Assembly (NCBI RefSeq): GCF_037042905.1
Contig: NC_087253.1
Span: forward strand, 1,550,001 to 1,614,000
Source: Lytechinus pictus
Lineage: Eukaryota
Direction: 5' to 3'
DNA: 64,000 nt
The position numbers and the translations under genes were made by a program. Shown here in pieces: positions 1,968 through 14,800 of the stretch (positions within the stretch are counted from its first letter, which is position 1; every line of letters begins with the position of its first letter). Below the pieces are notes generated by a model, which saw only the letters and a list, made by a program, of their open reading frames with translations, made no database searches and had not been told where the DNA came from.

Positions 1968-3315
1968 CATTACAACAATAACTTTATGAAACATAATGTG
2001 CTCAGGTCCTATTTGTTCATTATTCCTGGTACTAGCATTGTCTGTTTAACGAGATATACATGTACAATCATGTTGTACCAAAACGTCCTGTTTTCAAGTC
2101 AATATGCACCAAATATATATTATCGCATTTCGAGTTATTATTGTTTTATGTAGTGACATATGCTTCTTTTCATGACTACTTAAAGTGATAGCCCCATTTT
2201 AAGGTCTGTATATAAAAAAAAATCCTTGTTCGTGTTCGTGCTTACGTTCGAATTAGTGGATCGATGAGATTTGTCTGCTCTTCATGAATTCCTGAAATCG
2301 GTCATTAAAATGTTTCTTTTTCTAATGTAAATACCAAAAATGTTCAGCTCGCGCTTCGCGCTCGCATCATTTGTTTAGTGAAATACGTATGGTCATAGTA
2401 GATTCCTACAAACAAGCCTTAGAATGCCCCTCTTAAGATCTGAATTTCCTATATTTTCAGCTCGCACTTTGCGCTACTGAGATGCGTATGATAATCATGA
2501 TTACTATGACTACAAAAAGCTCTTCATGTGTTTGAATGTGATTCTAACAAAATCAGCAATCGCTTGGCACTCGCATTGGATGACTATGGTGAGATATGTA
2601 TACTCTTAATGGATTCAAAAAAAGAAATAGTCCTTAAAATGTCCCTGTTTGGGGTCAATATATACAAAATTTTCAGCTCGCGCTTCGCGCTCGCATCATT
2701 TTGTACGTGAAGTACGTATGGTCTTCGTAAATTCCTACAAACAAGCCTTAGAATGCTTCTCTTCAGGTCTGAATTTCCTAAATTTTTAGCTCGCGCTTCG
2801 CGCTCGCAATATTTGATTAGTGAGATGCGTATTTTAATCATGATTACAATGACTACAAAAGGTGTTTCATGTTTTCTAACAAAATCAGCAAGCGCTTGGC
2901 ACTCAAATTAGATGAGTATGGTGAGATATGTATTCTCTTATTTGATTTCTAAAAAATAGTCCTTAAACTGTCTCTGTTTGGGGTCAATAAATACAAAAAT
3001 TTCAGCTCGCGCTTCGCGCTCGCATTGTTTGTTTAGCGAGACAGATACGTATTTTTTTATTTTATTTAATAGCTTATTTTTACCCTTTTTAGATTTGAAT
3101 TTCAAAAATTTTCAGCTCGCGCTTCGCGCTCGCATCATTTGATCAGTGTGATACATTACATATCCGTTTAATGGCACAGTCCTTAAAATGTCTCTATATA
3201 AGGTCAATAGGCCTATACCTGGTAATTGAGCGCGCTTTGCGCGCTCACTGAGCGACTCAAAAATTTTGCTGGTGCCCCCCCCCCCCCCAATGCCGTGACC
3301 CACGGTACGCCACTG
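1968..3315. mobile_element. Non-autonomous repeat with internal sub-repeats (motif AGCTCGCGCTTCGCGCTCGCA), ending in GTACGCCACTG; probable target of the LTR insertion
   Basis: Motif recurs near 2345, 2674, 2787, 3003 and 3113, with degenerate copies near 2458 and 3228; duplicated blocks of ~330 bp. Confidence 0.6.
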
Positions 3316-4752
3316 AGTACGAGTATAGCAAGTATAGCAATGGTCCCCTGCAATACACTGCCTTTTTCATTAAATTGACCCCCAACACCATCACTTCACC
3401 CACCACGAAAATGAACGTACTAATGTTGTAAATTGGAAGTTTTAACAAAAAAATTGTCCATTTTGTCAAAAGCGCTCTGAAATTTGTCATCATTTGGGAT
3501 ATGTTTTTTTTTGTTGAAAAAATGGCTCGGTCGCTATATCCTCCCTGACCGGGGCTAATGTTAGAGTTACAAGTGTAGTTAAGGGTTAGAAGTGTCGATC
3601 CACATTTCAAGTTGTGGTTGTTGCCAAATAATAATAAAGAAGTATGCGCGTGAAGTACAAGTACGTCGAATAATTTACCATATTCTATGTATTCCATTTT
3701 TTTGGTCGAGTGCTTTTCGATTATTTTCCAAACATTTTTATATTTGCATTGCACATAATACAGTTTCTCAAGTTGCCAAATTTATTGGGGGCAAATCGAT
3801 ATGTTTCCCCAAATATTTTCATGGGGGCGATCGCCCCTTGTCCCAAATGATCGACGCCTCTGATTAGAATTATTTAACTCTATTCTCTGCAATACTACTC
3901 TATATTGTGGAATAAAGAATTTAGATAAAGTTCTCCAAATGATACGTTTCACATCGAAAAAATTCCTCCCCGATCACCATGATGTTTTTATGGGGTTGGG
4001 AGTTAAAGGTCTCTAAGTTGTGAAAATATCGCTCTTGAAATTAGGAATTTGTTGCTCGTTCACTATGCTCACTCAAATACTAAATGATGTCTGGAGATAT
4101 AGCAAGAACACAGGTAAACTTCTTGGTAGCTAGTCTTGCCCCAATTACCGTGAAGTGAAATCACATGCTCTGATTGCGTTGAAATTAATATTGACACTTA
4201 TATAAATTGGTTATGCAAAACATTTCCTTGTATTTTGAATATGTGACTTTTTCTGCTCGGTCGCTATGCTCATTCGTGTAATGTTGTAAGTATATATTTT
4301 CGAAGGGGCTGTACGTGGGCAGCTGCTTGGTCAGTATAGTATCCCACGTACACTATGCAGCCCATAATATGCTATTTTCATAGTATTGAATAAACCAACG
4401 TCGCAAATTTCTCAAGCCCCAGAAGCCCCCCCCCCCCCCCCCCCGCCCGCCCCAATAAAACATCTAGTCTAGAACTACGCCTAGATACGATGGTCTCCTA
4501 GATTCCATCAATGAAATTAGAATTTCTATCAAAAAAGTATTTCAATTGCATGATTTTAAAAATAGGTTATACAAAATTTGTTACAGGCGTTTCCGCCACG
4601 AGCCTTTGCATTCTTCTGTTAGCAAATCTTTCATAAATTTACACTCTTTTATGATGAATGATTTAGCATGGATTATATTGAAAAAAAAACTTACTTTGTA
4701 AAAATGGAAGAAAATAATGTCTTTTTGAAAAAAATGAAAACATTAAATCTTC

Positions 4753-4915
4753 CTGGACCCAATTTCATAAAGGACTTGCAAATGTTGTAACTTTGCCATT
4801 ATGGTAACTACCATGGAAACTTTAATTCTGATTGGCTGCTTAGCCTTGTTACCATGGTAGTTGCCATTATGGCAGAGTTACAACAGTTGTAAGTCCTTTA
4901 TGAAACGGGGCCCTG
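4753..4915. mobile_element. Short palindromic MITE
   Basis: Inverted ends GGACCCAATTTCATAAAGGACTTGCAA / TTGTAAGTCCTTTATGAAACGGGGCCC; related fragments near 6500-6640 and 15560-15680. Confidence 0.6.
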
Positions 4916-5310
4916 GTTTTGCTTCACGTTTAGTCACTTTAAAGCCCGTCGTGACGTAAACTCTTATTGGATGCACATTGTGACATAGCCCCATCCCTTC
5001 TCTGATAGCTCGTTAATGATGCGTTGGGCTATTGGGAAAATTAATGAAGGAAAATGGGAAAGAATTTATTTATTCTACTTCATAGGCTGACCACCTGAAA
5101 CTTTTGCAGAACCACCCTGAAAAAAAATTATTGTGCAATAAAAATTTGCACGATAGATTGCACGAAAGACAGGGGTTGCACCACGGGAGGGTGGCGGGGC
5201 GGCTCCCAGTGTTTCTTATAAGTAGTGAAAAAGAGGAGAGTGAAAAGAGAAAGGGAAAGGTAGAGCATGAAAGCGTATAAAAGAGAAAGTTGTGTGTAGT
5301 GTGATTCAAT

Positions 5311-5626
5311 GGCCCGTATTCTGAAGTCAGGTTTAGCTTAGACCGGACCATGGTCTAACTCTGTGCTAAAATTATGGGAAGCCAAAAGTGTCAAAATTTT
5401 TATTAAGTTGTATGTTTCTTATGTTTACTTTGCTCTTTCCTGATTCATCGATGGTGAAGACAACCATCTTTTTATAGTTCCTAGACAATTATGAATGATT
5501 TGAGAGCCAAATGAGCTAAAATATGATATCTCTACTGTTAGTGATTTATGCAACATTTGGCTATCCATAATTAAACCACAACTTTAAACCTGAGTTTAAG
5601 TTAAACCCGACTTCAGAATACGAGCC
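5311..5626. mobile_element. MITE with 3-bp TSD (PIF/Harbinger-like); other copies at 34475-35155 and ~51922-52193
   Basis: TIR GGCCCGTATTCTGAAGTC / GACTTCAGAATACGAGCC; flanked by AAT...AAT here and CAT...CAT at the 34475 copy. Confidence 0.75.
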
Positions 5627-7561
5627 AATGAGAATAAAAGTAAGTCGTCTTCACAGTCCCCTCCTATTAACACCCCAGTGTCTCCCCTATGTACAGAGCC
5701 CCACCCCGCTCTGTACCGTGATGGACTACCTTCGGTTTTTTATATACCGATTGTTCCATCTCCGTTTTATGAATAAATACTGAAAATCTAGATTCTATTG
5801 CAGTAAGTTTTATTGGTTCTGTTTGCGATAGCTGAGCCACAACTCTGTTTTATGAATAAATACTGAAAATCTAGATGTTGACCAGATTCTTCATTGGTTC
5901 TTGTTTTTGTTTCGTTTTAATGTTTTTTTTTTCGATATGGCTGAGGCTGAGCCATGTCCAATTAATTTATGTTTGTAACATAGAGCAAGTAGAATTGAAC
6001 TAGTTTGCCCACTGGTATCATGATAGTTGTTTATATCTTACGTTCTGAAACGAAAATGAAATTCAGATGAAATTAATCATTGTTGATCAGCCTTTTATAT
6101 TACACCGTTAAAACGTGTTTTATAATGAATTTGATTAATCTAGTGTGATAATTTAGTTAGCTTGTTGGACGTGTAAACCGTTTCTCTTGATGAAATTTGT
6201 CTGAATTTGTAATGCCCCCATCTTTGACTTGACTCGTTGTGCTAAACGTTAATACCAACACCTACTTCTTGAGTTGGAGGTTTCAATCGGGGTCTGTACA
6301 TGCAGACTATGTATAGACAAGCTGTTACTCGTATAAATACAATGATAATTAATCAAATCAATGTTGGTGATTTATTGTGTGTCATGACGGGGTTTTTTAT
6401 CACCATTATTATTTTTTTTTGGGGGGGGATTGTTATTTTGTTATTTTATCATTTTTTTTTTTTTACAGAATTTCTTCCGTTCAAACAAGCAATTCATTCT
6501 TAATGCCAGTTTGTGGTAGGACCTGGTTGCCTAAAAGTTGTTTTTTCAATGATAACTTGATTGGCTGTTGAGCATTGTTACCATGGTAGTTACTATTAGA
6601 CTGCAACGTTATCAAAATGGCATCTTTTAAGCAACTAGGGCCCTAATACATGTATATTTTAGAATGATTTATCAATCATAACTATAATATCAAGCAGCTC
6701 TGAAAATTTAAGAATAAATAAATATATTTACAATACTTACCTTAACACTGCATTTCAAAAGATAATAAATCAATTTCCCCACGAATATATAAAGTTTAGT
6801 TAACTTCCATACATATTTCTAATATATATCAATGGTGGTTCTTCCTTTGAGCAAAAGTTTGTAAAATTACCGTTTATCACGTCGTTGAAATTTAAATTTG
6901 CCTCCCTTTTCAAAATTTAAATTCCATTTGAATGATTCAAGTACTGCTAGCGACGAATCAGATTGTTAAATGCAAAGTGAATTATTGTACTAGTATTTTG
7001 TGTCGAGGAGAACCTAATAAGAAATAGGCTGTTCATTATTTTATGATTAATCCGAATACAAAAATACTTTTTTTATCATTTGGTAATTTTGCGAATATTC
7101 TATTTCTCTATGTGACCAAAACGTTTGAATAAAATGAAAATGCAGAAAAGTGATACTTTTCGAAATGCTGGATAATTTGTTGCATCTAAATCTTTACAGC
7201 ACTAAGTGACTAACCATTTTGAAACCATTTATTTTCGTTTATTAATTTACCTAGTTTTACGACATCAGTTGGTTTTTATACGTATAATGTTTGATGCAAG
7301 AAACACCTCAATCAACTAAAATTCGTGATTTCCAGAAATACTAAAAACATAATGGCCCATATTCAAGACCCCCTTTCTGAATACAGGCCAATTTATTTGC
7401 AGTTGTCTTCATTTAACATTAACGCGAAAGAGAATAGGCCTATTACTTTACAGCTTAAAATCCAAAAGTACGATTACTTCAAATTTAAGTATGTTTTTAT
7501 AATCTTTTGAAGTATGTGAAAAGGGGAAATGATTTGATATCTCTTGAAATACAGTGTCTAC

Positions 7562-10500
7562 TTACATCACCCTCTCGAGCTCGTCAACGACCTCATCGAT
7601 GGTAGGTCGGCAGAGATGGGTATTCTGCCGACAGATGTTCCCAATGGCGGTAAGATCGGCGTTGGTCGTTCGATCTCCCATCAGGGTCAACAGTCGTCCG
7701 AGCTGGAATACGTCACTCGAGACAGAGATCGGATGGTCATCGAGGGCGCATTCTGGGGCAATGTGAGTATAGATCTCCTGTAAAAAAAAGAAGTATATAA
7801 AGTCAATTAATAATCTTCTGATTAGAGTTCGATCTATTGTGATCCAAATTATACAGAAAAGCAGTACAAAAGTTTGCATCGAGTTAGAAATTTTTTGAAA
7901 GATTGCCAAATTTGATTTAAAAAATTAATTGAAAACGTGTTAAACATACCCTCCTTCGGTACTTCTCCTTATCCTCGCTGGAAAAGCAGAAGGAGAAGGG
8001 TTCAGTTCGGGAACAAGCCAGCCCAAAGTCCACTATAACCACTTGCCATCGTCCAGATGTAGCCTTTCGAAGCAAGCAGTTGTCTTCCTTGAGGTCGTTC
8101 ATCAAGAAGCCTTTCTCGTGAATCACCCCAAGTGACTTGGCAATGTCGAGAGCCAGACTGAACCTATTAGAAAAAAAAAGGATAGATAATGAATCATAAA
8201 GAAAGCAAAGGAAACTCCAGATAATCCTAAATAATTAAATGAATCATCACTCTTACCATTCTTGTTGACTCAGTGCTAACTCTCTCATGCCACGGCTGAG
8301 TGTCCAGGTCTCACCCGTAGTCGTGTCCCCGATGAAATCCATCGCAAGGCCAATCGTACCTGTACTGATCTCCAAGCACCCGAGGAAAGTCGGGAAGCAA
8401 TCCTCTCTGCCAAGAACGTCGAGGATGAAAGCTTCGGACTGGATGACCTTAACCTATCAAAATGCAAAGAGTTGGAAAATTACATCAAAATTAAAAGAGT
8501 ATTTTATTCCAAAATATTTTTTAGTATGCCTTGAGTTACAACCTTTTTTCGATTGCATTGTTTAGCCCATGTGACCCTGTCTAATGTTACGCTGTAACTG
8601 TTTTATTTTATTTTATTTTTATTTTTTAAGAGAATCAACAAACCTTCTTAGTCATCTTCTCAAAGTCGTTGGGGAGGTCGAAGGTCTTCAATGCGATGGG
8701 ATGGTCGGTAGCACGATGACGGAAGAGATGGACTGTTCCGTTTACTCCACTGCCCAGGAAGACGTCCCCACCTCCTGGAAGGAAGGACTTCAGATCGCCC
8801 ATTGCCTGGACGAAGGAAGATGGTTGGACAAGGGTAGGGCCAGTTGAATTGCTGGAAGGAGAGGTGGCTACACCAACAGCTGTGCTCACTGACGTTACTC
8901 TACAAAGAGGGTATAAACATAATAGAGCTTTATTAACTCGAGGGGTACCAACTGCTGCTTCAGAACCACTGGCCTGTGTGCTAGATGTTTGGTGGTCTAT
9001 TGACAAATTGTGAAAAACGGAAGTAACACCATTTTATCCATCATTTTATCCATGTTTAATTCATTTCACAATATTTTTTTTTTGGGGGGGGGGGGGGAAA
9101 CATGCAAAATATTTTTTAATGATGAGATAGATGGAGTTTTTCACGAATGTTATTTATTTATTCATTTTTTTTTGCGTTGGGGTTAAGTTTATATTACGGA
9201 GTTATCTGTTATAATTTTCTTTTGTATTTTTATGTTGTTGTTTTGGTACATTTATAAAATTGATTTGATTACAAACTTTTGATTTATAATTATGCTTGCT
9301 TACGCAGGTGGTAGTGCTAAGGTGTCAATGGGGGTTGTGTCTGGTGTCGGTGGGTTGTACGGTGCAGTGTCTGGTGTAGATGGGTTGTATGGTGCTGTGT
9401 CTGGTGTCGGAGGGTTGTATGGTGCGGTGTCTGGTGTAGATGGGTTGTATGGTGCGGTGTCTGGTGTAGATGGGTCGTATGGTGCTGTGTCTGGTGTAGA
9501 TGGGTTGAATGGTGCTGTGTCTGGTGTAGATGGGTTGAATGGTGTTGTGGTTGGTGTAGAGGTGGGTGCTACTCCATGGTCTAATGGTGCTGAAGACAGT
9601 GGCTGGGGGTTGCCTCCAGAATACCTGGGCGACAACAGACTTGACATTAATCTAAATGTTTAAGTATCATTTATTTAATTAATGAGCAAATATGTATACG
9701 TCTGTCAGCTAACTACTAATTTTGAATGTTCCTTTGTAAGTTTTCTTTTTACCTGCTGTTTCCCCATCAGTTTGTTAGGAAAATATATTTCGCGTTGCAA
9801 CTGCCAGGAAAAAAAATTAATGAACATTATTTTCTATACTTTATAATTTACTTATGTTTGTATCAATTTCTTTGAATGGATTTTATTGTGATTGTTTGAA
9901 TTGATATTTATTTGACATTTACCAAGAGCCTTGAGTAGCAGCTCTGTCGATAGGAGAAGAGCTATCAACTGGCTCCCAAGTCAAATCCTTGGAAACAGAA
10001 ATGGAGAGAAATTAAAAGTATCACTAAAAACTGATCTATCATTAGATGGATTCTAAAATGTAATTTGTTTGGTGAAATCGAAAATTTGAACATTTGGGAT
10101 ATTTTTCGAAGCTAACCAAAATATTGTACGAGTAGTGTTTAACAATATATAAAGGAAGTTTTTGTAGTTTCTAACAAAAACTACAAAAACTACAAGATTC
10201 CTGTTAAACAATAATGAAATAGAAGATATTTACTTGAAGATTCTTTAAAGCAGCATCTCTTTGCTTTCTGGCCTCTGCCAGTTCCACCTTCAAGACCTGA
10301 ACTTCGATCTCAGAGTCCAGGAATCGATCTTGGAAAGCCTTGGCCTTCTTTTCTGCCTGTAGCCTCCTTCCCTCTGATTCTGTCACCAGAGAGTTGATCT
10401 TAGCGAGGAGGTCTGCGCTGTCTCCATCAGGCCCAACACCAAGCTGGGAAGCCAGGCTCTGTGATTTAAATTTTAAAAAAGATTTGTTTAATTTCGCATT

Positions 10501-11892
10501 GCAAGAATGAAACAAGAATCATAAATCAATAAATCTGTAACTTGTTCTTTTATACATTATGTATAAAAATTATATAGCCAAATAATAAAGCAAAGCTGAA
10601 ACATAGTCGTCACCTTTTCATCAGTGAAATTTTGTCGAAATTCTGTTACCATAATAATATTTTTCACATCATATTTTAGTTAAACTATGGATATAACATT
10701 TTGAAGGATTTATTCCCATAAATTTGTAGATTACAAGTGAAATCTACTTTCAAGAAAAGTAAAAAGACGTACAACAATCTTTTCCTGAAGTTGCTGTTTC
10801 TCCAGGGACTGTTGCAAGCACTGCAGAAGCAGCTTGCCCGACATGTTGCCAGCTGATTCGTTGGGTGAGATGGTGGATGGGGAGAATGTTGGATCCTGAT
10901 ATGACCAACACAGCTCCTGTTTAGAATGGAAGATGTTGTTGTTTTTATTGATGATTACTATAATTGATGACATTTTAAAACCTTAAAACATTGGTATAAG
11001 GTTCAATTACGTAAATCATATTTTACTATAATTTACCATTCCATATATCATAAAAGTTTTTTTTTCGTTTGAGTCCTATTTTCATTTATATTAATTCATT
11101 AATTAATTCATTAATTCATTAATTAATTCATTGATTTATTTTCTGTACTTATACAATCTTCTATTAATTAATTTTGTTTATTCATTTGGTTATTTTTATT
11201 TTTGGTTACTTATTTACTGATTAAATGATTTTGCGTTTTTATTAAAACTATTCGTTTACATTATTTAATAATTATTAATTCATTTATTCATCAATTATTA
11301 TTTATTTATTTATTTATTCATTTGTTTGTATATTTATTTATTCATTTAGATATTATTTATTTATTTATTCATTAATTTATGATGAACCATTCATTCGTTC
11401 ATTCATTTATTTTTTTTCTTTTGAGGTATTGAAGAAAAACCTTTTTTTAATTCAATATTTCTTTATTTTTAATTCTACCCATAGATCACGTGCTTTATGA
11501 TATACTTTCAATCTAATTATCTGACAATGAATTTAAATATAAAAATGAATCTTTTGACTTACACAAACTTGATAAGCTTTACAAAATAATATTAAAATGT
11601 TATATATTGTCAGTAATGATTTAATAAGTGATCATTCATTCCAGAATGTATTGTCATTGATACAAGCTTCATTATGTAATATTTTTTCAGACAGATTAAC
11701 AGTCTGATATTCATTCCTTTTTTTTTGTTTCATTTCTATTTCATGACATTTACATATTCTAATTTGATATAATTTGCTTACATCCATGGGTTTAACCATC
11801 GGTGATCTGATGGCAGGAGAAGCTGACCCAGTACGGGGAAGAGGTCTCAGGACCCAGGGGGTAGGGGGACGGACAAGTCGATTGCAATACAT
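7562..11892 (-). CDS. Uncharacterised 9-exon gene (~582 aa): coiled coil, S/T-P decapeptide repeat, divergent non-RD Ser/Thr protein kinase
   Basis: Exons 11892-11782, 10916-10773, 10458-10234, 9987-9923, 9624-9304, 8899-8644, 8453-8257, 8163-7950 and 7777-7562 are all GT-AG and join into one 1749-nt ORF. Kinase motifs: LGSGVNGTV, IALK, alphaC E (IQSEA), MNDLKEDN, VDFGLA, HIAPE, SDVFQLG, RPT. The last four (kinase) exons are secure; the start and upstream joins are less so. Confidence 0.78.
9329..9549 (-). repeat. Coding 30-bp tandem repeat, ~7.3 copies, T(A/T)P(Y/F)(N/D)P(S/P)TPD
   Basis: Direct repeats of GGTGC(T/G/A)GTGTCTGGTGTAGATGGGTTGTAT on the + strand, inside exon 9624-9304. Confidence 0.9.
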
Positions 11893-14800
11893 CGCCAAAA
11901 TATCTGTTTCCCGTGATCAAACTAAAAGAAGCTATGTTCTGATAAGAGAGAAAAGTTGGGAAGAGAGTATAGAATGAAGAAATGGTAAAAGGAAAAATTT
12001 ATTTATAAATCGAAGAAATTATACAAACATGGCGGGGGGCGCTTCATCTCCCGGACGAAACCAGAATAGATTTAAGCGAAAGTGCGGGGGGGGTGTAGAT
12101 ATGTTCACCTTTACTAAACCTAAGAAAATATTTCACTTTTCGCGTTAGATTTGTCAAAATCTACACATCACGTAAAGTTCGCTTGCAAATTCTTAAAATT
12201 TACTGTGATCTGTTCTAAAGTAGTAAATTGATATAACATGTCTACATCTAACAGAGATATGCGATATTATATCGAATTTTTCAAAATAGTTCTAAAGTTA
12301 CTCAACTAAAATATACGAGCTCACTATTTGATATGAATCTGCCGCTTTGTAAGACTAGGTTCCTGCCCTTTACATTCTATCCCGACAACTTATCCATGGG
12401 GTATACCCAGTTGTTGTGTGTCCGGACAGGTTGTGTGTCCGGACGATCAATTTTAGAAAGTCATTTGGAAAAAATTACAAGCGAAGTGTCATCAATTTTT
12501 AGTACAAAATGTAAGGAAATATTATAGAGAACAAAATATAAGATGATTACAACTATTGAATTCATATTTTTAGTGTAATCTTAAGACAAAAAAGAAGGCT
12601 TCAAAAATATAAAGTGTCCGGACACCCGATCCCCCATCCTAGATCTTAAACAGAAAATTTGACATTTATCATACCACATTTTTTTTCACTGCGTTTTTAA
12701 TATTCATCATATTTCCTCCAAACTTGCTCAGGTTATCAAGAAATACCTCTAATTATTATACTGACCTGACGATCGGCAAAAATGACTTAAAAATGCAAGC
12801 AAAATTCGTCAAAAACTGTCAAAAAATTGGCAGTGAGTTCTCTAGATCGCAAAGTTGCAAAGAGAATGAAGTTTGTTTACAAACAGTAACTATTGTTGCC
12901 ATGGCGGGGGCGCGGCTGTTACCAGGGCGTGGTCACCCATATTGCGTATGAATGCCAAGGCGCTGCGCCGTTATGCAGTCATGTTATTGGTGCATTTTGA
13001 TGAGCGTTCTATGCGTAGTCGGCTGACTTTTTACTTTCAAGTTTACTATTATTACGTAATGTTTTAAGGATGACGCAATAATAAAAATGTCAAAAAAATA
13101 ATGTAAAATATCAACAAACTTGATGTTATTCATCCGACTTGGTAATTTTGATGCAACTTCAATCAGATTATATTAAAAACTATTAAGTGTGCAGTGCTAG
13201 CTGATAAATGTTGTCAATCAGATCTGCAAATGAATATAGAACATACGAAGAGGGTAGGTGCTTTACAAGATAAAGCAACGCAAGCACGTAGAACTAGCAA
13301 AAAAAAATATTATATTGAATACATTTTTATCAAATTGTAAATCAAACAAAATAATGAAAGCTTGGTGCCTGAGTTTAAATATGTTTTGAATATTGACTTC
13401 ATAACAAGATATTTTAAGCTCCATTTTAATAAGCCACTTGAGTAAGATCTGTTTTTCATCGAATAGGGAATGTGAGTGCGAAGTGCGACCGAAAATTTTT
13501 TATAATGAAACGAAAGAATTTTTCCACATCTTCCTCTCACCTTATTTTATTCAATTGTCTTTCACCTCTTACTTTTCCTCTTTTTCTCCTCTCCTTTCTC
13601 TTTTTTTCCCGTTTTTACGCCACCATAAGTGGGGCCGGGCCGCGTAACCATTAGCCCCCCCCCCCCAGGATCCGCCTATGGAGAGGAAGGGGTAAAGTAC
13701 CACTTGGTCTTTCTGTTTGGTATCATCAAAAAATCTGATCCTCATTAATCTACTGTCCGTCTACTAACCACTAAGTTTAATTGCCATTTCGCCCATAATT
13801 TTTGTCTAATTTCTAGTGAGGCTATATTCATGTTGTCTGATACCCAATTCGTCTCACATTGCTCGGTCTATATGAACTGTTTATAAACCAAATTTTCATT
13901 TGACAAAGAGCAAAGTAATAAGGAGAAAAGGTGAATATCTGGACATTAAAATAATTAAGTTAGACAAAGCTGGCATAACACCAAGTGATGATTGAACCGA
14001 ATTGTAATTAGACCAAATTAATATTAGAAGAACCGATTTAAGCCACGATGGTGTTAGACGATCCAAGAATTGTACCATCTGCTAGACTCTATGGATACAA
14101 ATCAAGAAATGAGAGAGAAAAAATACAGAAAGGAAAAGCAAAAATATTCAAAGAGAGAAAAGGAGAAGTAATTTGAAAGAAATCACCGAGATCCCATAAC
14201 AAAGGATATTCAGGACAATATTTCATATATTTGAAGAGATTTTTTTTTATTGCATGACTGCATGGTACAGAATATCAAGTTATACAAACCAACTAAAACC
14301 ATGTGCACCAACTCTTTATGCAAATCTTCCAAGAAAATCACAATTACACAATTAAGGCAAAATTTTGAGCTATCCGTAACAAAAGAACACAAAATTAGGA
14401 ATCTTTACAAGCAGTAACACACCAAACCATTGACTCACCGCAAGAAGGTCATATATGCCAAGTAGCACTAAGGACTTTCTTGCGGGTGAAGTCAACAAAA
14501 TATACTTGGTATACAATAAAAATAGGATAGAAGCAAATAAATTGGATTACAGTTGTGAACTGGTTCATTTTTTCATGCTCTAATAGAAGCATAACAAAAT
14601 ATGTTTTTAACGATGAAGTACAGGGGTTCGTTTCACAAAATCATTATCACTCTCTATGACAACCTAGTGTGTTTTAAGATTAATACATGATTCTATGAGA
14701 TATGCATGAATTTAGGATAACTGCTTGTGAAACAGGGCCCAACCAGACCATGTATGAGTTAAATCTACAGAGATTATGATATAGCTTTCAATCCAATACA

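Follow-up and report, generated by a model that had tools for sequence, protein, structure and literature searches.

A structurally intact nine-exon kinase gene of Lytechinus pictus, probably one copy of a multi-copy echinoid coiled-coil/repeat-linker/kinase family

The window analysed is a 64,000-nucleotide stretch of Lytechinus pictus DNA (contig NC_087253.1). On its minus strand, between positions 7562 and 11892, nine exons join in frame to give 582 amino acids without a stop. All eight introns are of the GT-AG type, all 16 splice sites are intact, and the introns measure 865, 314, 246, 298, 404, 190, 93 and 172 bp. In-frame splicing, GT-AG boundaries and the exon structure of the paralogues thus confirmed the compact nine-exon gene of about 582 amino acids proposed in the initial annotation, and its introns, put there at about 90-870 bp, range from 93 to 865 bp.

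Exon 1 (11782..11892), with a start ATG at 11892, would encode residues 1-37. Exon 2 (10773..10916; residues 38-85) carries a conserved LCWSY-DPT stretch, an alternative start at Met62 and the first helix of the coiled coil, the main segment of which lies in exon 3 (10234..10458; residues 86-160; 92-96% amino acid identity with the paralogues). Exon 4 (9923..9987; residues 161-181 plus 2 nt) belongs to the linker, and exon 5 (9304..9624) contributes its Pro/Thr-rich part with seven decapeptide repeats. In exon 6 (8644..8899) the linker passes into the kinase N-lobe, with the Gly loop GSGVNG and the beta3 Lys in IALK. The alphaC Glu, beta4-5, the hinge MDFIGD and alphaD are found in exon 7 (8257..8453), and alphaE, the catalytic loop FLMNDLKEDN, DFG and the start of the activation segment in exon 8 (7950..8163). 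Exon 9 (7562..7777) encodes APE, alphaF (SDVFQLG), short C-terminal helices, an RPT motif and the stop codon TAA at 7564-7562. The position of this stop matches that of the paralogues. A splice donor at the stop codon (GAT|GTAAGT) leading to further 3′ coding exons was considered and rejected: the paralogues have GC there, and the conserved blocks downstream lack an open frame. No hydrophobic segment is present in the product (maximum KD19 of 1.38).

Exon 1 is assigned to the coding sequence tentatively. Its open frame and GT donor are kept in six paralogues, which partly supports a coding role, and it may instead be 5′ UTR. RefSeq models of close paralogues begin at the Met62 of exon 2 rather than in exon 1. 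The paralogue on chromosome C18 has Leu at the Met62 position, and its coding sequence continues upstream through a different first exon. The dN/dS of exon 1 is uninformative, with 2-5 nonsynonymous against 2-3 synonymous changes.

A relic of an ancestral extra exon, exon 5b, lies in intron 5 (8940..9014, minus strand). In the RefSeq paralogue this exon is coding and is 123 nt (41 amino acids) long (locus L018, 6068-6190). It is present at loci L015, L018, L019 and L021, partial at L020, truncated at L016 and in the window copy, and missing from three intact copies on C7. The relic in the window is truncated and has a 1-bp insertion, so that an open frame requires splicing to bypass it. Its inclusion in the mRNA was rejected as a gene model, because use of the canonical acceptor leads to a stop after five codons. 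The window copy has dropped an ancestral linker exon, the frame being kept by joining exon 5 to exon 6.

The gene has many relatives in the same genome. Exon 8 has 58 matches genome-wide, with 87-94% amino acid identity at eight other loci. At least eight intact close paralogues, including the window gene, are found on chromosomes C1, C2, C7 and C9, together with damaged copies and relics. When the exons were projected onto seven paralogues, exons 1-4 and 6-9 were equal in length, AG/GT sites were kept and no stop was encountered; exon 1 fell outside one locus, and the boundaries of exon 5 could be placed in three paralogues only. The C2 paralogue is represented in RefSeq by XP_054764818.2 (here P0001; "uncharacterized protein LOC129271510", 557 aa). 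It has the coil, the PDTAPYNPST-type repeats and the xND kinase of the window copy, and its exon 3-9 junctions are identical. Two L. variegatus proteins of the LOC121406799 / LOC121406885 type, P0160 and P0161, share this architecture. Over residues 62-582 the window protein is 81% identical to P0001, 80% to P0160 and 77% to P0161. The window copy differs from the RefSeq models in lacking the 41-residue exon 5b and in repeat number, and the models start at the exon-2 Met. Thus, by the layout of its exons and introns and by its succession of coil, repeat linker and xND kinase, the window gene belongs to an echinoid LOC129271510-like kinase family. In the protein collection searched, a single L. 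pictus model is full-length, a few others are shorter or partial, and the window copy is absent. The family proteins are predicted to be soluble, of about 63 kDa, with an N-terminal coiled coil, a disordered Pro/Thr-rich repeat linker and a C-terminal kinase.

The linker repeat is a 30-bp tandem array of 7.5 copies (9336-9560) encoding seven [FY][ND]P[SP]TPDT[AT]P units. It had been described as CTD-like. It does fit the pattern Y-x-P-[ST]-[ST]-P, as does the YSPTSPS of RNA polymerase II CTD heptads, with which the Spt5 CTR was considered. The match is superficial, since the period is ten residues and not a heptad, the number of copies, seven here, varies among paralogues, and the array is not conserved across species. 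Exon 5 measures 321 nt here and 291 or 306 nt in three projected paralogues, and in the S. purpuratus relatives nothing beyond isolated degenerate motifs takes the place of the array. From these comparisons the decapeptide array is read as a Lytechinus expansion, with the look of a low-complexity linker that evolves quickly.

The translation and the family alignment place the kinase motifs G-S-G-V-N-G, IALK, the alphaC Glu, F-L-M-N-D-L-K-E-D-N, DFG and APE in the window protein; where HRD would be expected it reads MND, and its portion past alphaF is short. Single window exons fall below the cut-off of the Pfam Pkinase profile (PF00069); exon 8, the only one to match it at all, scores 28.3 bits against 31.7 (E 1.4e-6). 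Whole-domain, structural and complex results were read from P0001, 81% identical to the window copy. This paralogue scores 54.8 bits against the same cut-off of 31.7, over profile positions 7-190 of 263. Its AF2 kinase-domain model (pLDDT 92.5, pTM 0.89) has only two helices past alphaF. Foldseek returned a bilobal kinase fold with probability 1.00 and TM values of 0.64-0.76 to many kinases. The initial reading of the motifs and of a short C-lobe was thus borne out by the translation, the alignment and the paralogue model.

Across 16 family members G-x-G, A-x-K, Glu, N-D-[LI]-K-x-x-N, D-x-G, APE and R-P are invariant or nearly so. The HRD His position varies (M/I/R/C/H/S), and the Arg position is always Asn. 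With Asn rather than Arg directly before the catalytic Asp, the domain is of the non-RD type. This class, as defined by Dardick and Ronald, includes for example IRAK1, RIP-type kinases and plant pattern-recognition receptor kinases; the definition rests on one residue and says nothing of ancestry, and an immune role here would be an analogy only. Loss of the HRD His and Arg, and a C-lobe one helix shorter than usual, could mean that catalysis is abolished and that the domain works by binding, as in a pseudokinase or scaffold. This is quite improbable, given how uniformly the 16 members, and for the most part distant cnidarian relatives too, retain the Gly loop, the beta3 Lys, the alphaC Glu, the catalytic Asp with the Lys and Asn of D-x-K-x-x-N, and the DFG Asp; pseudokinases commonly lose some of these residues. 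Moreover, non-RD kinases are active, and PKA itself carries Tyr at the HRD His position. The domain, judged from its residues, is probably an active, divergent TK/TKL-like kinase of the Ser/Thr type, non-RD and keeping all phosphotransfer residues.

The best structural neighbours are TKL and TK kinases (TESK1/2, LIMK1/2, Dictyostelium TKLs, IRAK4, ABL, KIT, JAK1), with Foldseek TM values of about 0.7 to ABL, KIT, JAK1, IRAK4, LIMK and TESK at 16-22% identity. Like these, the family has the alphaF motif SD[VI][FY]x[LF]G and a C-terminal R-P-[ST], and its catalytic loop D-L-K-x-x-N is of the Ser/Thr type. It differs from them in sequence, in xND for HRD and in the helix missing past alphaF. Single-sequence phmmer against PDB chains gave no match at E<=1e-5. 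The family profile against PDB matched STE20, JAK1, CDPK, IKK, MST and BRAF/RAF kinases about equally (1e-16 to 1e-20). Neither orthology nor a clear best match to a named TKL family (LISK/TESK, IRAK, RAF, MLK) was found, and the automatic names of relatives contradict one another. The fold is TK/TKL-like, and no named kinase family is close, as the initial annotation had held in declining to assign one.

Dimerisation through the coiled coil had also been proposed. A homodimer model of paralogue residues 1-100, equivalent to the exon-3 region, scored 0.55 against 0.01 for the best control; among solved structures, 21 of 30 homodimers and 0 of 23 monomers attain that score. Contacts agreed by at least 92% between runs, pLDDT was at least 77, and the interface was heptad-spaced and in register. 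A parallel coiled-coil dimer is thus supported in silico.

The duplicated unit, of about 7.5 kb, extends beyond the exons. A conserved 5′ flank (12648..13089, minus strand), a putative promoter/5′ UTR region, recurs with 75-85% identity at 13 further places, each of them a family locus or relic. A conserved 3′ flank block (6565..6867, minus strand) is 69-75% identical and collinear in seven paralogues. About 1.8 kb past the stop lies a family-specific 68-nt two-hairpin element in the orientation of the gene (5685..5769, minus strand). Its 35-nt core is identical in close copies and is matched exactly by 5695-5729 of the window. The element has 22 matches genome-wide, all adjoining family genes, against none for the reversed control. 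Of its alignment cells 97.9% pair, three pairs showing compensatory changes, compared with 23-52% in slid controls. An Rfam search of 5000-13500 gave no match at E<=1.

The two-hairpin element was found downstream of every family gene checked. A Helitron-like reading of it was rejected, with just 22 copies, all gene-associated.

Since the paralogues share introns and flanks, the copies arose by duplication at the DNA level. It had been suggested that the gene is recently arrived or associated with a mobile element or virus. The occurrence of units of similar extent on C1, C2, C5, C7, C9 and C18, with relics on C3 and C17, and the hairpin close to the 3′ edge of the unit could be explained by a mobile cargo or a viral origin of the 7.5-kb unit. 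Such an origin is extremely unlikely. The unit is bounded by no terminal inverted or direct repeats, contains no transposase, RT or Rep ORF (a PNMA/gag-like ORF at 294-1226 lies outside it), and its homology to other copies fades gradually, at differing points between pairs. The flank comparison, proposed as a means of recognising a mobile unit by shared termini, showed flank blocks beside family genes only, with the hairpin likewise confined, at 13-22 places in total. Viral contigs yield only generic kinases, at 22-37% identity. Neither terminal repeats, element enzymes, terminus copy number nor viral homologues thus mark the unit as transposable or viral cargo; the introns are common to the copies and the family is old in echinoids. 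The family would have expanded through duplication of this unit at the DNA level, with birth-and-death evolution.

Selection on the coding sequence was assessed against the paralogues. In comparisons of the window copy with each of them, dN/dS was 0.17-0.24 for the kinase part and 0.27-0.44 for the coil part. The branch between the window copy and the other seven carries 21 synonymous changes and 14 nonsynonymous ones, giving an omega of about 0.20 (P=4e-6 for departure from neutrality). In the tree the window copy groups with the paralogues at 99/96 support and has the longest terminal branch of the clade (0.051). L. variegatus P0160 nests within the L. pictus C2 clade, and the window lineage is therefore older than the split of L. 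pictus and L. variegatus.

RNA-seq support for the nine exons was sought in three runs of unspecified tissue or stage, about 25% of each being sampled. No read could be assigned to the window copy. At the locus 12-29 reads per run were recovered, the majority matching only in part, with no joints reported. Reads covering position 8275 all had the base of the paralogues, T on the minus strand where the window copy has C, and two of three loose-end sequences matched the C18 paralogue exactly. The joined transcript anticipated for the nine exons was thus not seen in these samples.

These data allow the window copy to be a silent or recently disabled duplicate, unexpressed or mis-spliced through the exon-5b relic, within a family that is otherwise functional. 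The paralogues were detectably transcribed in the same runs, the window copy is without the protein annotation that other members have, and its terminal branch is the longest. Use of the relic acceptor in intron 5 would also introduce a premature stop, and the family does lose members: in the copy at C5:5.03M the frame is broken by stops and by length changes, and the loci on C3, C17 and at C7:34.6M are flank-only relics. This reading is nevertheless rather unlikely, though it deserves more weight than the other alternatives considered here. All 582 codons and the 16 splice sites have stayed intact in a lineage older than the species split, and omega on the window branch is about 0.2. Exon 5b is also wholly absent from three intact C7 copies. 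Weak embryonic expression of urchin-specific kinases is described in PMC4883820 (citing Bradham 2006), and the runs are of unspecified tissue or stage. We favour, with somewhat better than even confidence, a real and structurally intact host gene of L. pictus, one copy of a multi-copy, DNA-duplicated echinoid family of coiled-coil, repeat-linker and kinase proteins under birth-and-death evolution.

The named close relatives are all echinoid, with members in Strongylocentrotus and Diadema. Corals and Clytia have distant relatives with an HND catalytic loop and an equally short C-lobe, distant HND relatives are also found in an abalone, and catalytic residues are mostly kept in the cnidarian ones. 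The proposal of a lineage-specific family therefore stands for the close, named relatives, all echinoid, but not for the wider clade, which is not urchin-only. According to PMC4883820 (citing Bradham 2006), the S. purpuratus kinome includes 21 urchin-specific kinases of the 'Other' group without family-level homologues elsewhere and of unknown function, which are weakly expressed in embryos. The restricted range and low read counts of the window family fit this description, which does not imply membership among the 21. Searches of the literature for the LOC identifiers, for non-RD kinases in sea urchin and for the HNDLK/HND motif returned nothing relevant.

A broader reading, held with little confidence, is that cnidarians, echinoderms and possibly molluscs share a metazoan kinase clade not described before, marked by an H/x-N-D loop and a C-lobe one helix short, within which urchins would have a coiled-coil-dimerised birth-and-death family sharing a 3′ RNA element. 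If so, the shared downstream element would point to post-transcriptional or 3′-end control that is coordinated across all its members, perhaps in an adult or immune setting.

At the level of the protein, the coiled coil would hold two chains as a parallel, in-register dimer and bring the kinase domains together. Being non-RD, the domain is probably independent of activation-loop phosphorylation, and its output would then depend on oligomerisation, on the level of expression or on the binding of partners. Auto- or hetero-phosphorylation could plausibly take place on the linker, which is rich in S/T-P.

An unannotated kinase paralogue changes no major open question. It adds an intact, unannotated paralogue to the record of a family with at least eight near-identical copies and one full-length model in the protein collection. 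For kinase biology the family offers a natural experiment, in which the HRD Arg is fixed as Asn, the His is free to vary and a C-lobe helix is gone, yet purifying selection maintains every catalytic residue. As L. pictus is genetically tractable, the function of the family would be directly testable.

The nine open reading frame pieces of the window gene lie on the minus strand (exons 1-9 at 11892-11782, 10916-10773, 10458-10234, 9987-9923, 9624-9304, 8899-8644, 8453-8257, 8163-7950 and 7777-7562). On translation they splice at canonical AG/GT sites into a single open frame of 582 codons, and the ~582-aa protein put together from in-phase fragments in the initial annotation was thus recovered at the same length, with AG/GT joins throughout. 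The introns measure 865, 314, 246, 298, 404, 190, 93 and 172 bp. The protein is computed at 63 kDa with a pI of 4.9, and no hydrophobic segment is present in it (maximum KD19 = 1.38). Window exons were projected onto seven paralogues (loci L013-L019; exon 1 lies beyond the edge of one fetched locus). Exons 1-4 and 6-9 are identical in length, keep AG acceptors and GT donors and are free of in-frame stops. Exon 5 is 291 or 306 nt in the paralogues against 321 nt in the window, and its boundaries could be projected in three copies only. All junctions from exon 3 to exon 9 are the same in the window gene and in P0001, a paralogue on contig C2. The RefSeq models of the close paralogues start at the exon 2 Met (window residue 62). 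P0155, the model of the C18 paralogue, has Leu at this position and begins in another first exon, from which coding continues through the conserved LCWSY-DPT of exon 2; a coding role is therefore probable for the 5′ half of that exon. In six copies exon 1, with the limits drawn here, is open and conserved, and 11892-11782 is given as a putative coding exon, not a proven one. At the C7:46.81M paralogue (L013, C7:46809000-46818999), exon 1 and its surroundings occur twice, at positions 1848-1958 and 3292-3402 of that locus, ~1.4 kb apart.

P0001 has an additional 123-nt exon (5b) between window exons 5 and 6. This exon is ancestral, since its peptide has a counterpart in S. purpuratus proteins in the family alignment. 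It is present at four paralogue loci (L015, L018, L019, L021), partial at L020, absent from three C7 copies and truncated at L016 and in the window, where a minus-strand relic at 9014-8940, now without its 3′ half and donor, carries an insertion of 1 bp. Splicing from the relic's canonical acceptor would bring in a stop five codons on, so the frame stays open only if 9304 and 8899 are joined directly (9304|8899), which is the structure of the three C7 copies without exon 5b.

The window is C9:1550001-1614000 of the 812-Mb L. pictus genome, in which exon 8 finds 58 matches. Eight other loci are close (87-94% amino acid identity; four on C7, one on C1, two on C2, one on C5), a second tier on C18, C5, C7, C1 and C12 shows 58-81% identity, and the third tier consists of numerous ORFs of 317-371 aa that lack introns (35-46%). 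In one tandem array (C7:28967102-29008950) a 337-aa ORF without introns, 45% identical to exon 8, is present in at least 11 copies with a period of ~4.0-4.3 kb, and similar intronless clusters are seen at C12:28.26-28.31M and C4:29.1-29.3M. The close paralogues align with the window across exons and introns at ~76-80% DNA identity. These copies therefore arose by DNA duplication, and their shared introns rule out a retrocopy origin. An exhaustive phmmer search of 1.84 billion representatives with exon 8 gave 211 matches at E<=1e-3 and nine at E<=1e-10, the top one being P0001 (RefSeq XP_054764818.2, "uncharacterized protein", 557 aa), whose exons match the C2:45.07M paralogue at 100%. Other relatives are found in L. 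variegatus (572 and 562 aa), S. purpuratus (393 and 424 aa) and Diadema setosum (322-716 aa), all labelled "uncharacterized" or bearing automatic names that contradict one another. In three homology searches the window protein was absent from the protein collection at comparable length. The window gene is a real, intact, unannotated paralogue of a known but uncharacterised sea-urchin kinase family.

The translation contains GSGVNG, IALK, the alphaC Glu, FLMNDLKEDN, DFG and APE. Among single window exons, exon 8 alone touches Pfam Pkinase (E 1.4e-6); weak matches are expected because the fragments are just 65-85 aa. Across a 16-member family alignment the Gly loop, A-x-K, alphaC Glu, L-x-N-D-[LI]-K-x-x-N, D-[FL]-G, APE, S-D...G and R-P are invariant. 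At the HRD site the His position is taken by M, I, R, C, H or S, and the Arg is always replaced by Asn. D-L-K-x-x-N is a Ser/Thr-type catalytic loop. Pfam Pkinase covers the relatives over profile positions 4-190 of 263 only, and single-sequence phmmer found no PDB chain at E<=1e-5. The family profile reached MINK1/TNIK, JAK1, CDPK, IKK-alpha, MST1 and BRAF at ~1e-16 to 1e-20, in alignments that always stop at alphaF or soon past it. In an AF2 model of a paralogue kinase domain (pLDDT 92.5, pTM 0.89) alphaF is followed by two helices only, against three in canonical kinases. Foldseek neighbours of this model are the TK/TKL kinases ABL, KIT, MerTK, JAK1 and IRAK4, and likewise Dictyostelium TKLs, HT1, LIMK and TESK, all at TM ~0.7 and 16-22% identity. 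With such mixed matches, the earlier statement that no named kinase family can be assigned holds.

Residues 62-160 of the window protein are helical and heptad-like. The equivalent segment of P0001 (residues 1-100), modelled as two copies, gave a homodimer score of 0.55 against 0.01 for the best control; of structures already solved, 21 of 30 homodimers and none of 23 monomers scored that high. Contact agreement between runs was at least 92% and partner pLDDT at least 77. The contacts are heptad-spaced and in register, which indicates a parallel coiled coil, and the model supports the dimerisation proposed initially for the window protein. Between coil and kinase, a 30-bp tandem repeat of 7.5 copies (9336-9560, minus strand, exon 5) encodes seven [FY][ND]P[SP]TPDT[AT]P decapeptides. 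Likeness to the Pol II CTD is confined to the Y-x-P-[ST]-[ST]-P pattern, and the description "CTD-like" is superficial; the unit is a decapeptide, its number differs between paralogues, and S. purpuratus has degenerate single motifs only. We read the array as a probable fast-evolving disordered linker; it is also a possible candidate for phosphorylation. Taken as a whole, the window protein is predicted, with somewhat better than even confidence, to be catalytically active as a non-RD Ser/Thr kinase and to dimerise through its coiled coil.

The main rival, that the window copy is silent or decaying, bears on expression and selection. About 25% of each of three raw L. pictus RNA-seq runs (tissue unspecified) was read. 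Between 12 and 29 reads per run fell on 5.3 kb, mostly as partial matches; no exon joint, 9304|8899 included, and no read assignable to the window copy was found among them. All reads over 8275 show the base common to every paralogue and not that of the window. Two of three loose-end read sequences match the C18:1.09M paralogue exactly, and the third reads PTVSLSAQAP, the exon 5b sequence of some other copy. Thus the paralogues are transcribed at low level in these runs. Bradham et al., as cited in PMC4883820, reported weak embryonic expression of urchin-specific kinases. The window copy also has the longest terminal branch in its clade (0.051), and the family does lose members: C5:5.03M has stops and frame-breaking length changes. 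On the other side, pairwise dN/dS of the window with the paralogues ranges over 0.17-0.24 for exons 6-9 and 0.27-0.44 for exons 2-4. On the branch separating the window from the other seven copies, exons 6-9 carry 21 synonymous and 14 nonsynonymous private changes (omega ~0.20; P=4e-6 against neutrality) and the coil nine of each (P=0.012). In the maximum-likelihood tree L. variegatus P0160 sits within the L. pictus C2 clade, and the window copy, the C2 clade and the C7+C1 clade form an unresolved three-way fork; the window lineage therefore predates the L. pictus/L. variegatus split, and the copy is still intact despite that age. A silent or decaying copy is the less likely reading, and a functional kinase gene is preferred. 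Turnover within the family is evidenced by three relic loci (L048, C3:31676000-31682000; L049, C17:30781500-30787500; L050, C7:34645000-34653000), which keep the 5′ flank block and have lost the coding exons, C3 exon 1 excepted, as expected of birth and death. At C3 and C17 the flank blocks of the 3′ side are kept too, together with the 3′ element.

This element, 68 nt with two hairpins, lies at 5685-5769 (minus strand), in the orientation of the gene and ~1.8 kb beyond its stop, and occurs also at L013, L018 and L036-L047. It was located downstream of every kinase-family gene checked, always in gene orientation and in two or three copies at some loci. All 22 genome matches adjoin family genes, and a reversed control gave none. 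A 35-nt core is identical among close copies, though the synonymous sites of these copies differ by ~20%, and the element recurs with sharp edges 3′ of paralogues whose exon 8 is just 58-67% identical. In its fold 97.9% of cells pair, against 23-52% in slid controls, and three pairs show compensatory changes (e.g. A-U to G-C in five copies); the second stem has such changes. No Rfam match was found. It could be a 3′UTR or 3′-end element, or a small RNA.

Homology between copies spans a ~7.5-kb unit (window ~13089 to 5684), whose edges fade and differ from pair to pair. No terminal repeats bound it, no transposon ORF lies within it, and both flank blocks are found solely beside family genes. 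Viral contigs gave generic kinases only (22-37% identity). On these grounds a mobile-element or viral origin was rejected. Outside the unit, an intact minus-strand ORF of 310 aa (294-1226) matches PNMA (Pfam PNMA 1.4e-12), retrotransposon gag and the CCHC zinc knuckle; it is either a gag-like gene or the remnant of a retroelement. Two local MITE-like inverted repeats lie just beyond the 3′ edge (4752-4916 and 5306-5631; arms of 69 nt at 86% and 38 nt at 87%). The family profile found distant relatives in the coral Montipora, the hydrozoan Clytia, an abalone and other assemblies, at 112-132 bits against 76 for the best PDB kinase. Most carry L-H-N-D-[LI]-K-S-N-N, the abalone protein being an exception, and all share the short alphaF-to-RP spacing of the urchin family. 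Since these relatives far outscore any PDB kinase and have the same spacing, the urchin family would be no newcomer but one branch within a broader HND clade that is as yet undescribed. The window gene, suggested in the initial annotation to be possibly recently arrived or associated with a mobile element or virus, is instead an ordinary host gene.
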